Shown piece by piece: positions 354 to 62,177 of a DNA stretch of 64,000 nucleotides. The position numbers and the translations under genes are program-made. Numbering within the stretch: the stretch's first letter is position 1; each line of letters begins with the position of its first letter. Source of the DNA: Lytechinus pictus (taxonomy: Eukaryota); contig NC_087245.1 in the NCBI RefSeq assembly GCF_037042905.1, positions 11,098,001 to 11,162,000 on the forward strand. Reading direction: 5' to 3'. The notes under the pieces were generated by a model. The model ran no database searches, was not told the DNA's origin, and saw only the letters and a program-made list of their open reading frames with translations.

Positions 354-1678
354 CTGACAAGAATCTACACCGCCTTCAATGTAACCAGCGCATAATTCTG
401 CTTCTTCTACAATATTGTACTGACTGTACAGAGAACTACAGGTGTTGTCGCTAATGAGATGAACAAGTGCCTTTTGAAGGTCGTATGAAACTGAACCAGC
501 TGAAGAAAAAAAAACAGAAAAGGAAAAGGATTTAAAGAATCACTTGCATTTGAATTAATATGGTGAAGTTCATTTTAATCATACAACAATTTTTTTCTTT
601 TTCAGCCTTTAGAAGGCAAATTAATGAGTTGGGAAAAAGATAACTTATTAAATGTTTAATCATAACTGTATGTCGAACAAATGCAGCCCGATGAAACACA
701 TTAGAAAATCATTTGCTATAATTACGTTACCTCCAAAGTACGTCGTTCCCCATCCTGCGATCCAACATCGACTGTACGCCATCGTCTCGTTTTGAAGAGT
801 AGCTAGACAAGCTGGTCTTACATAATCAGTGAATTCAACAGGTTCGGATAGATGAAGAAGTGCAATATCATTTGCTATTCCATTAATAGCGCCGTAATTT
901 GGATGCATGATGACGTCGTCAGCACCTCTCACCTCCTTATGCTCATGGTTATCAGACAAATGGCGAATTCCGAGGGTGATGGTGAAATCACTGGCTACCA
1001 TACCTTCTCTGTAGTTTAAGAATAAAAATGGCATACATTCACCGTGGTGTTCGAGTATGAATATGAATGCGAGTTACACAGGTCTACCATGTGACGGCTG
1101 TTGATAGAGTCCCTTATTAACAAGAGGATAAGACCTAGGATCCGATTACGTATATAGGAACGCATTTGGGATGAATAAGATGACTTAAAGGTGCAGAAAG
1201 ATATATAGTTGTGGTTCCAAACGAATAATCAGGTTCCGAGTCCACACACCCCTTGTCTACCCTAAACTAGCTTCTAGTAGTGGAAGATGGATGTATACAT
1301 CAGTCAAATATTAAAGATTAGCAAAATTCAAGTCACGAATAGTATAAGGTCAGGAAATATTTGAGTTAAACCACGCTGAAACGCAAGGTAAAATTGAAAA
1401 GGTGGTACTTGAAATTAAAGTTAATAAACCGTTACTAGGTACCGCTGAGGTTTATTACCCTACTCTACCAAATAAATAACTGGCAAATACTTACGCGCAG
1501 TGAGCTGCAGTCAAGATCCATTGGTTACTAATCAACGTACCACCACAAAAGTAACCTCCCATTTGAACAGTTGCGATCCAAGGGAATTCCCCTAGATCAG
1601 CATCAACTCCTCCAACTATTCTAGAGTGGTAATCATCAACAGCGGGTCGGGTACCACATGTAGCTTCATTCGTTAAAT
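354..1678 (-). CDS. Trypsin-like protease domain 7 (partial; exons 1495-1678, 731-1008, 354-499)
   Basis: R|IVGG, AAHC, NDIALL, VDSCQ; the GDSGGP exon is expected beyond the left window edge. Confidence 0.93.

Positions 1679-62177: not shown

Follow-up and report, generated by a model that had tools for sequence, protein, structure and literature searches.

The window, by which we mean the whole stretch of 64,000 nucleotides of Lytechinus pictus DNA that was analysed, contains 49 exons on the minus strand from 354 to 62177, placed by tblastn with exon peptides and a splice-site search. All their splice sites are canonical, and together they make up 13,594 nt, about 4,531 codons, free of stops; the two limits, proposed in an earlier note on this DNA, are exact exon ends. 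Single exons match the Pfam families CUB, Ldl_recept_a, Fz and Trypsin, and the Fz exon matches Frizzled CRDs. The exon classes are fixed in length and phase: CUB 360-381 nt (1-1), LDLa 114 nt (1-1) and Fz 354 nt (1-1), while the protease domain is made of four exons of 184, 278 or 299, 143-152 and 163 nt. The exons are listed below by module (M1 to M7) with the evidence for each, including one exon on either side of the window.

+65500..+65317, outside the window (-): M1 protease exon 1 (His exon); tblastn, AG/GT sites
61879..62177 (-): M1 protease exon 2 (Asp102, 299 nt); tblastn, AG/GT sites
61108..61250 (-): M1 protease exon 3 (143 nt); tblastn, AG/GT sites
59642..59804 (-): M1 protease exon 4 (Asp189, Ser195; 163 nt, phase-1 donor); exon model, C-terminus collinear with S. 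purpuratus domain 1, then CUB
56812..57171 (-): M2 CUB exon (360 nt, phase 1-1); exon model (tblastn, splice sites)
45155..45268 (-): M2 LDLa exon, in which the RefSeq LOC129255053 CDS begins at an internal Met; exon model, RefSeq
43302..43655 (-): M2 Frizzled exon; exon model, RefSeq
42385..42568 (-): M2 protease exon 1 (R|IVGG activation site, His57); exon model, RefSeq
41407..41705 (-): M2 protease exon 2; exon model, RefSeq
40265..40416 (-): M2 protease exon 3; exon model, RefSeq
39842..40004 (-): M2 protease exon 4 (Ser195; GDSGGP); exon model, RefSeq
37246..37608 (-): M3 CUB exon 1; exon model, RefSeq
35411..35770 (-): M3 CUB exon 2; exon model, RefSeq
34629..34742 (-): M3 LDLa exon; exon model, RefSeq
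34002..34355 (-): M3 Frizzled exon; exon model, RefSeq
33699..33882 (-): M3 protease exon 1; exon model, RefSeq
33293..33570 (-): M3 protease exon 2; exon model, RefSeq
32908..33050 (-): M3 protease exon 3; exon model, RefSeq
32607..32769 (-): M3 protease exon 4 (GDSGGP); exon model, RefSeq
29713..30072 (-): M4 CUB exon; exon model, RefSeq
26990..27103 (-): M4 LDLa exon; exon model, RefSeq
26333..26686 (-): M4 Frizzled exon; exon model, RefSeq
26039..26222 (-): M4 protease exon 1; exon model, RefSeq
25633..25910 (-): M4 protease exon 2; exon model, RefSeq
25230..25372 (-): M4 protease exon 3; exon model, RefSeq
24929..25091 (-): M4 protease exon 4 (GDSGGP); exon model, RefSeq, join of a Ser exon to 24100 in RNA contig (M3/M4/M5 not separable)
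23741..24100 (-): M5 CUB exon 1; exon model, RNA contigs, RefSeq
22448..22807 (-): M5 CUB exon 2; exon model, RNA contigs, RefSeq
21466..21579 (-): M5 LDLa exon; exon model, RNA contigs, RefSeq
20928..21281 (-): M5 Frizzled exon; exon model, RNA contigs, RefSeq
20552..20735 (-): M5 protease exon 1; exon model, RNA contigs, RefSeq
20147..20424 (-): M5 protease exon 2; exon model, RNA contigs, RefSeq
19735..19877 (-): M5 protease exon 3; exon model, RNA contigs, RefSeq
19420..19582 (-): M5 protease exon 4 (GDSGGP); exon model, RNA contigs, RefSeq
16506..18908 (-): mucin-like exon (800 aa, 33% Thr, 18% Ser); exon model, RefSeq
14347..14460 (-): M6 LDLa exon; exon model, Pfam, RefSeq
13412..13765 (-): M6 Frizzled exon; exon model, Pfam, RefSeq
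12928..13111 (-): M6 protease exon 1; exon model, Pfam, RefSeq
12532..12809 (-): M6 protease exon 2; exon model, Pfam, RefSeq
12038..12180 (-): M6 protease exon 3; exon model, RefSeq
10578..10740 (-): M6 protease exon 4 (GDSGGP); exon model, Pfam, RefSeq
9751..9774 (-): 24-nt linker micro-exon (phase 1-1); intron conservation, RefSeq X1/X2
7609..7989 (-): M7 CUB exon 1; exon model, Pfam, RefSeq
4659..5030 (-): M7 CUB exon 2; exon model, RefSeq
3865..4224 (-): M7 CUB exon 3; exon model, RefSeq
2399..2512 (-): M7 LDLa exon; exon model, RefSeq
1822..2175 (-): M7 Frizzled exon; exon model, RefSeq
1495..1678 (-): M7 protease exon 1; exon model, RefSeq
731..1008 (-): M7 protease exon 2; exon model, RefSeq
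354..499 (-): M7 protease exon 3; tblastn, AG/GT sites, RefSeq
-320..-482, outside the window (-): M7 Ser exon; exon model

The earlier note had given each trypsin domain its own CUB-LDLa-Frizzled head. This holds for LDLa and Frizzled, but M1 and M6 have no CUB, and M6 carries the mucin-like exon instead. The latter contains a 150/306-nt tandem array (16753-18609) and is left out of RefSeq isoform X4. The micro-exon is the sole block conserved between old paralogous introns; RefSeq X1/X2 include it, its paralogues are subject to alternative skipping, and a matching linker peptide is found in the S. purpuratus orthologue. The six GDSGGP exons of the window (59804-59642, 40004-39842, 32769-32607, 25091-24929, 19582-19420 and 10740-10578) were confirmed as 163 nt long with a phase-1 GT donor; each is preceded by AG, and the donor leaves one base over.

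Together with its flanks, the window belongs to a series of 14 modules (M1-M14) across 150 kb, in which 121 phase-compatible exons form a single frame of 9,375 aa. This frame reads, in order, a cytoplasmic tail, a type II membrane anchor, a SEA domain, a Thr-rich linker and 14 repeats of CUB(0-3)-LDLa(1-2)-Frizzled-trypsin. Its ATG lies at window +83781 and is followed by the short tail. In exon N3 (window +76536..+76389), basic residues come just before a hydrophobic segment some 25 residues long, which aligns with its counterpart in the S. purpuratus orthologue; judged by hydrophobicity and orthology, it is a predicted single, uncleaved type II signal anchor as in the type II transmembrane class of serine proteases (TTSPs). 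The SEA region is 64% identical to that of the orthologue, including the GSIIV motif, and the Pfam SEA match itself sits on the orthologue (E 1e-6). Tail, anchor and SEA occur upstream of M1 only. Extending the window, as the earlier note had advised, thus supplied the membrane exon, and for the stop a candidate: a terminal exon at -66574 with an acceptor followed by AA-TAA, which would match the RefSeq C-terminus (a final Glu, then stop). Downstream of M14 there are mainly retroelement-like frames. In the junction introns, a pattern of ATG, hydrophobic stretch and phase-1 donor had four matches in two of the 11 stretches scanned, none of them conserved in paralogous introns, and these were taken as chance occurrences in AT-rich DNA.

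Expression data and public annotation bear on how these exons are joined. RNA read mapping covered window 19101-25100, where RNA contigs confirm every M5 intron. In 917-nt contigs from two studies (labels X16 and X1), 31 nt of a Ser exon are spliced to the CUB exon at 24100; this 31-nt bridge does not tell M3, M4 and M5 apart. Variant letters in the reads match the paralogues M3/M4, therefore several modules are transcribed. Read depth is zero past the M5 Ser exon, at 19101-19300. A sequencing-run search with 7500-13200 (M6 to M7) matched just 0.05-0.07 of words, a search for contigs encoding the RefSeq protein returned no match, and the M2 CUB exon, used as a protein query for transcript-derived fragments across its junctions, matched a single entry, a genomic ENA fragment. 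In RefSeq, LOC129255053 (XP_063951986-89, 5,960 to 5,159 aa) has nine protease domains (M2-M10) and LOC135153396 (XP_063951984/85, 2,434 and 2,442 aa) has four (M11-M14), and the proteins of both loci show 0 mismatches against our independent exon model. The junctions 39842>37608, 32607>30072, 24929>24100 and 10578>9774>7989, predicted in the earlier note, and the mucin exon are all present in XP_063951987. Thus at least two S1 domains in one mRNA and frame, the mark of a polyserase, are found in the nine- and four-domain models and in the RNA protease-to-CUB contig. The joins 59642>57171, 56812>45268 (an 11.5-kb intron) and -22699>-32829>-34830 (a 12-kb intron) are placed by the exon model, outside RNA and RefSeq support, and it is at the latter two that RefSeq splits the locus.

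The Strongylocentrotus purpuratus orthologue, LOC578975 (XP_030829981.1, 3,304 aa; X1 XP_030829980.1, 3,724 aa), is an uncharacterised predicted protein collinear with the L. pictus frame. Its N-terminal tail, anchor, SEA and Thr-rich linker are those of Lytechinus (64% identical), as are its CUB-LDLa-Fz-trypsin modules (about 70-76% identical) and the short acidic linkers behind each protease, but there are four protease modules instead of 14; therefore the expansion of the array in Lytechinus is recent. In the tree, Lytechinus M3-M14 are all of the S. purpuratus third/fourth-domain type. Predicted orthologues with four modules occur in other sea urchins, and relatives with two units in sea cucumbers and acorn worms. 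The array arose from a four-module ancestor through recent intragenic tandem duplication.

We consider it likely that the window covers the middle third of a single L. pictus gene of about 150 kb, encoding a type II transmembrane poly-serine-protease. The claim that one stop-free spliced frame encodes seven or more trypsin domains in tandem, all apparently active, is borne out by compatible phases, RNA contigs, the RefSeq nine- and four-domain models and the collinear orthologue. Nine protease units are in public annotation, and there are probably fourteen in all. That the locus is a tandem row of single-module corin-like genes, every one with a promoter and a signal exon of its own and an end just past its GDSGGP exon, seems very improbable. 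Tandem protease gene clusters are common, and unspliced read-through of each GDSGGP donor in the window meets a stop within 2-25 codons. However, in RNA contigs a Ser exon is spliced to the CUB exon that follows, RefSeq mRNAs link nine and four modules, and all 14 Ser exons end in a consensus G|GT at exactly base 163, the point at which similarity between the copies stops. Moreover, the junction introns hold no conserved or plausible start or signal exon, as had been claimed (five of the six in the window contain no start exon at all), and in the conserved 24-nt micro-exon there is no start and no stop. A division into three transcription units as in RefSeq, namely a 5′ gene (anchor, SEA, M1), LOC129255053 ending by read-through after M10, and LOC135153396, is unlikely in our opinion. 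RefSeq models do stop and start at those points, and the M10 read-through reaches a stop 11 codons on. Both downstream models, however, lack a signal peptide and take as their first residue a Met within an LDLa or CUB domain, extracellular and rich in disulfides; they therefore look 5′-truncated. The C-terminus of LOC129255053 is read-through of a donor that paralogous junctions splice, identical to the donors that RefSeq splices at M8 and M13, and the micro-exon and CUB exons expected after M10 are present and in phase. In S. purpuratus a single model runs from the anchor through the last protease. The break in RefSeq would be explained if M10 junction reads map equally well to shorter paralogous introns. 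In practical terms, what RefSeq models at this locus seems to be a single gene in truncated pieces, each starting mid-domain.

The number of modules is a separate matter. The gene may be real and the assembly oversized, with M7/M8, M9/M10, M11/M12 and M13 partly alleles or collapsed-and-expanded repeats and fewer than 14 domains in truth, which we regard as quite improbable. M7-M13 are 95-98% identical, introns included, and the near-identical units differ by dS 0.015-0.05, values within the range of sea-urchin heterozygosity. On the other hand, the 214 kb examined contain no gaps (0 N), there are more than two copies per unit type, and the copies are not built alike: the LDLa-LDLa units M12 and M13 lie next to each other, and M11 alone is preceded by an 8.5-kb insertion. 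Modules M1-M6 and M14, which are older, stand clearly apart in the tree and in dN/dS comparisons. For the full form of the one-gene reading we have a slight and cautious preference: all 121 exons would be in one mRNA, encoding a single 9,375-residue membrane-anchored chain with 14 competent trypsin-like domains, tethered by disulfides after activation, with four modules having become 14 by intragenic tandem duplication after Lytechinus and Strongylocentrotus diverged, and with a copy number that may vary between individuals.

All 14 protease domains keep His57, Asp102, Ser195, Asp189, Gly216 and Gly226, which extends what had been reported for domains 2-6, and by these intact catalytic residues all are apparently active. 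Each also has the activation site DDY(Q/H/N)SR|IVGG and the tethering pair of a propeptide Cys and Cys122, so that triad, Arg/Lys|IVGG and cysteine pair of a catalytic TTSP domain are complete in every module. The nearest solved protease domains are those of enteropeptidase, plasma kallikrein, factor XI, TMPRSS6, hepsin and TMPRSS2; for the M6 domain, medaka enteropeptidase-1 comes first among solved structures (E 6e-64). Among 16 module pairs, dN/dS is 0.13-0.30, which points to purifying selection. For polyserases, the functions of the R-IVGG motif and of the cysteines paired across the activation site have been described (PMC1435904). The protein is predicted to lie at the surface of the cell, with the N-terminus on the cytoplasmic side. 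Each zymogen unit would be cut after Arg, probably by a neighbouring unit, because all units have Arg/Lys specificity. The activated domain would then be held twice, by the Cys-Cys122 disulfide and by its own C-terminal run into the next module, and the product would be a membrane-tethered, disulfide-stitched string with up to 14 active sites. Its CUB, LDLa and Frizzled domains may act as exosites for binding, and the optional mucin exon may be a spacer.

Comparison with known proteases marks this as a TTSP/polyserase-type protein rather than the amplified corin-like module proposed earlier, because there are 14 modules with a type II anchor and SEA at the 5′ end, outside the window. Corin shares only the Fz+LDLa+protease combination. 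It has one protease domain, two Frizzled, eight LDLa and a scavenger-receptor domain, arranged Fz-LDLa(5)-Fz-LDLa(3)-SRCR, and no CUB or SEA, whereas L. pictus has one Fz, one or two LDLa and often CUB per protease, with nine to 14 proteases; Pfam found no SRCR match on the RefSeq protein. The stem is of TTSP type (SEA, LDLa, CUB, Frizzled), with Pfam matches to CUB, Ldl_recept_a and Fz both in single exons and in the RefSeq protein. Enteropeptidase and matriptase share the membrane-adjacent SEA, the CUB and LDLa stem and a trypsin-like domain with Asp189, but have a single protease domain and no Frizzled. Human polyserase-1/TMPRSS9 is a type II membrane protein with LDLa and tandem S1 domains in one chain, each preceded by Arg-Ile-Val-Gly-Gly (PMC1435904), features that L. 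pictus shares. However, it has three protease domains, only two of them active, against 14 with all catalytic residues intact, and no SEA, CUB or Frizzled between domains, whereas each L. pictus unit has its own stem modules; its domains are reportedly released singly, while those of L. pictus have the tethering cysteine pair. Ovochymase and polyserase-2 (Xenopus, human) likewise combine multiple S1 domains interspersed with CUB in one translated chain. They are secreted via a signal peptide, with three protease domains, some inactive (PMC1435904), and lack anchor, SEA, LDLa and Frizzled; the L. pictus protein has tail, anchor and SEA, and all its domains look active. The Diadema setosum homologue is annotated as 'ovochymase-like'.

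The architecture, unrecognised in the earlier note, is indeed absent from the literature we searched, with no paper describing the L. pictus gene or its orthologues, but it is predicted in RefSeq for L. pictus and, with four modules, in other sea urchins. It is an unstudied form of the known 'polyserase' proteases and not a new kind. In the polyserases studied to date there are two or three protease domains, not all of them functional. The L. pictus gene is an extreme supplied by nature: one membrane anchor bears nine to fourteen trypsin-like units that are almost identical and apparently active, and every unit brings binding modules of its own. The four- and two-unit relatives permit comparison. 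Thus L. pictus, a laboratory sea urchin amenable to genetics, offers a test of how multiplied active sites affect dose, avidity and self-activation, of how fast an array grows inside a gene, and of whether optional linker exons tune the spacing of units. If one mRNA does encode 14 sites, no other polypeptide with transcript support would have as many active S1 sites. Predicted vertebrate 'TMPRSS9-like' proteins reach 4,066 aa with 14 Pfam trypsin domains in Lepisosteus oculatus and 3,388 aa with 12 in Pelobates cultripes, therefore a dozen or more tandem S1 domains are not unique to the L. pictus gene in public annotation; unlike the latter, they are bare protease repeats without CUB, LDLa or Frizzled heads, and as unverified predictions they may fuse tandem genes.

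With flanks of 90 kb below and 60 kb above added to the window, the same exon classes extend from +66293 to -63948 (plus, above the window on the 5′ side of this minus-strand gene; minus, below it on the 3′ side). The array is thus about twice as long as the window, with 14 trypsin-like protease domains (SP) in total, each closing one module (M1 to M14, 5′ to 3′). From the first LDLa to the last Ser exon (the fourth protease exon, with GDSGGP and Ser195) the chain is stop-free over 8,979 residues and contains RIVGG, TAAHC, DIAL and GDSGGP 14 times each, and the phase-1 donor is identical in type at all 14 Ser exons. 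The full model has 121 exons and 9,375 residues and spans 150.4 kb.

Module order
M1: LDLa-Fz-SP
M2: CUB-LDLa-Fz-SP
M3: CUB2-LDLa-Fz-SP
M4: CUB-LDLa-Fz-SP
M5: CUB2-LDLa-Fz-SP
M6: mucin exon, then LDLa-Fz-SP
M7, M9, M11, M14: micro-exon-CUB3-LDLa-Fz-SP
M8, M10, M12, M13: LDLa2-Fz-SP

All six GDSGGP motifs in the window lie on the minus strand. Each exon carrying one is 163 nt long, is preceded by AG and has its donor (G↓GT) at exactly base 163, where the six copies diverge; the donors match the consensus (GTATGT, GTAATA, GTAATT three times, GTAAAT), and reading through them would meet a stop 2-25 codons later. The other exon classes, located by tblastn with exon peptides and a splice-site search, are likewise conserved in length and phase.

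Exon classes (length; phase)
CUB: 360-381 nt; 1-1
LDLa: 114 nt; 1-1
Frizzled: 354 nt; 1-1
Protease exon 1: 184 nt; 1-2
Protease exon 2: 278 or 299 nt; 2-1
Protease exon 3: 143-152 nt; 1-0
Protease exon 4: 163 nt; 0-1

Single exons matched Pfam CUB (E 1e-17 to 1e-19), Fz (1e-13), Ldl_recept_a and Trypsin. The stop-free frame in the window comprises 49 exons and 13,594 nt (about 4,531 codons). Its outer exon ends, 354 and 62177, are exactly the limits proposed in the earlier note, whose six 163-nt exons with a phase-1 GT donor and no stop were reproduced. The coordinates and junctions of that note are right, and all the junctions it listed except 59642>57171 are also in RefSeq. The LDLa acceptors of M6 (14461-14462) and M7 (2513-2514) are purine-rich (gaag and aaag) with weak pyrimidine tracts; this type also occurs in M9, M11 and M14, and RefSeq splices at the M6, M7 and M9 sites.

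RNA data (two contig runs and two raw RNA runs) were aligned to 19101-25100. All M5 introns are seen at the predicted bases, GT..AG, on the minus strand. A 917-nt contig, present in two runs from different studies, joins 31 nt of a Ser exon to CUB, CUB, LDLa and 54 nt of Fz. Its joint was placed at 24929>24100 in one run and at 19420>24100 in the other, because the M4 and M5 Ser exons share exactly the same final 31 nt. A Ser exon is therefore spliced to a CUB exon in RNA, by a short bridge that does not distinguish the paralogues. RNA depth is zero at 19101-19300, so no read-through past the M5 Ser exon is seen there. Variant letters in the reads are mostly those specific to M3 and M4, which indicates that more than one module is transcribed. 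Intronic segments 21901-22100 and 24301-24900 reach word depths in the thousands in the contig runs, with reads from both strands and many loose ends; they probably belong to an abundant transcribed repeat family, unrelated to expression of the host gene.

Two RefSeq genes of L. pictus were recovered by searching without a profile, first with the M6 Fz exon and then in two word-based rounds. Our exon model, made independently of RefSeq, shows no mismatches to their proteins.

RefSeq genes
LOC129255053, nine proteases, M2 LDLa through M10 (model residues 941-6889): XP_063951986 to XP_063951989, 5,960, 5,952, 5,840 and 5,159 aa
LOC135153396, four proteases, M11-M14 (model residues 6934-9375): XP_063951984 and XP_063951985, 2,434 and 2,442 aa

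Pfam finds nine Trypsin, 11 CUB and nine Fz domains, and no SRCR, in XP_063951987. LOC129255053 includes the mucin exon at the modelled boundaries and the micro-exon of the window. The isoforms differ only in skipped linker exons, so module spacing seems to be tuned by alternative splicing.

Linker exons
16506-18908, minus strand: mucin exon (800 aa), skipped in LOC129255053 X4
9751-9774, minus strand: micro-exon, with paralogues at -7764 and -53044; an 8-aa micro-exon is skipped in LOC129255053 X2 and LOC135153396 X1

In RefSeq the locus is split at two introns, of 11.5 kb and 12 kb, the longest it has. The former, 45269-56811 in M2, where the LOC129255053 model is broken, has a GC content of 0.32-0.35 and far exceeds the equivalent introns of other modules. 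These breaks could mark separate genes, but we consider it rather probable that they are truncations and that the locus is a single gene. Both downstream models begin mid-domain, with a Met in a cysteine-rich or CUB domain, and neither has a signal peptide. LOC129255053 ends by read-through of an M10 donor identical to those that RefSeq splices after M8 and M13, and beyond M10 lie, in phase, a conserved micro-exon and three CUB exons; reads across the M10-M11 junction would map equally to paralogous introns that are shorter. Anchor and SEA exons occur at the 5′ end alone, and the four-module Strongylocentrotus purpuratus orthologue is one model from anchor to last protease. The M1 C-terminus and the next CUB are collinear with the first protease of the orthologue and its CUB, and the 24-nt micro-exon is the sole conserved block in the old, diverged junction introns.

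The earlier note had reported no start exon between modules; our scan for start-like exons agrees for five of the window's six junction introns and gave only unconserved matches elsewhere. At 14821-14893 (minus strand), about 360 nt upstream of the M6 LDLa exon, a 24-residue, ATG-started, signal-peptide-like frame ends in a phase-1 GT donor; conceivably, a shorter secreted form comprising M6 and the later modules could begin there. Paralogous introns do not preserve this frame, however, RefSeq does not use it, and such frames easily arise in AT-rich DNA.

In the window and flanks, the N-terminus of the orthologue matches DNA only upstream of M1. From it, nine phase-compatible 5′ exons were modelled (ATG at +83781). 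The encoded N-terminus opens with a short tail; basic residues then lead into a hydrophobic anchor (about 25 residues), which is followed by a SEA-type region containing GSIIV and by a linker rich in Thr. Aligned over its full length with the orthologue, in which Pfam reports SEA, this N-terminal part shows 64% identity. Extending the window, as the earlier note had proposed, thus yielded a predicted anchor exon but only a candidate stop: homology of the repeat unit ends 90 nt beyond the last donor, and the candidate terminal exon is an acceptor followed by AA-TAA at -66574, fitting the RefSeq C-terminus (Glu, stop). Downstream of the gene, a 1.7-kb block (about -74783 to -76438) is about 89% identical to a tandem repeat at 5771-6374, between M7 CUB exons 1 and 2 (periods 31, 83 and 114 nt; unit CTAACTGGAACCAGTTGGGTAACTGGAAATC).

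The intact triad and the Asp189, Gly216 and Gly226 described in the earlier note extend to all 14 domains (His57, Asp102, Ser195). All 14 also have four internal disulfide pairs, Cys122, the activation site DDY(Q/H/N)SR↓IVGG and a propeptide Cys within CGTRPA. Between-module dN/dS is 0.13-0.30 (dS 0.015 to 1.0), meaning that the copies have been maintained as coding sequence. Among solved structures, the catalytic domains of medaka enteropeptidase and plasma kallikrein are closest (E about 6e-64), ahead of those of factor XI, TMPRSS6, hepsin and TMPRSS2; the Fz exon is similar to Frizzled cysteine-rich domains. The product would enter the membrane in type II orientation, with possible self-cleavage of the SEA domain at G↓SIIV. 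The units would be zymogens cleaved after Arg, and neighbouring units could activate one another, since all have predicted Arg/Lys specificity; self-activation has been reported for TTSPs (PMC12065894). In polyserases, a cysteine pair flanking the activation site is considered to hold the cleaved domain in place, and the R-IVGG motif is what lets a trypsin-like protease cleave there (PMC1435904). Every unit has both and runs on into the module after it, so a string of tethered active sites would be expected, not free proteases. CUB, LDLa and Fz may be binding sites, and the optional mucin exon may be a glycosylated spacer.

Published polyserases, such as polyserase-1/TMPRSS9, polyserase-2, polyserase-3, ovochymase and insect polypeptidases including Nudel, have two or three S1 domains (PMC1435904; PMC11172050). 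Our literature search found no paper naming the L. pictus gene or its orthologues. To this extent the architecture is undescribed, as the earlier note had suspected, but RefSeq already contains it as an uncharacterised protein. A chain of seven or more tandem protease domains is also not unique among public predictions, which include a gar protein with 14 trypsin domains, as in our model, and a frog "TMPRSS9-like" protein with 12. Given these, the gene is filed, on its predicted domains, as a TTSP-type polyserase with repeated CUB-LDLa-Fz heads, and not as a new category.

Protease domains detected in orthologues
S. purpuratus orthologue: four
Diadema: two to three by profile (three proteins); four by Pfam in the D. 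antillarum protein
Sea cucumbers, brittle star, acorn worms: one or two
Feather star: three
Amphioxus "TMPRSS9": six, LDLa only

In the phylogenetic tree, Lytechinus M1 and M2 group with S. purpuratus domains 1 and 2, and M3-M14 form tight groups, each specific to one species, beside domains 3 and 4. Growth of the array within Lytechinus is therefore recent. The youngest units differ by 2-5%, introns included, which is about the allelic divergence in sea urchins; the copy number of 14 is therefore provisional. At 27481-27620 (minus strand), in the M4 intron between CUB and LDLa, lies a 140-nt copy of the 5′ half of protease exon 2 (the Asp102 exon). Its identity to the corresponding exons of M3 and M5 is 95%, and its frame is open but lacks a matching donor. 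RefSeq leaves it out; it resembles the scar of a rearrangement that deleted the second CUB of M4.
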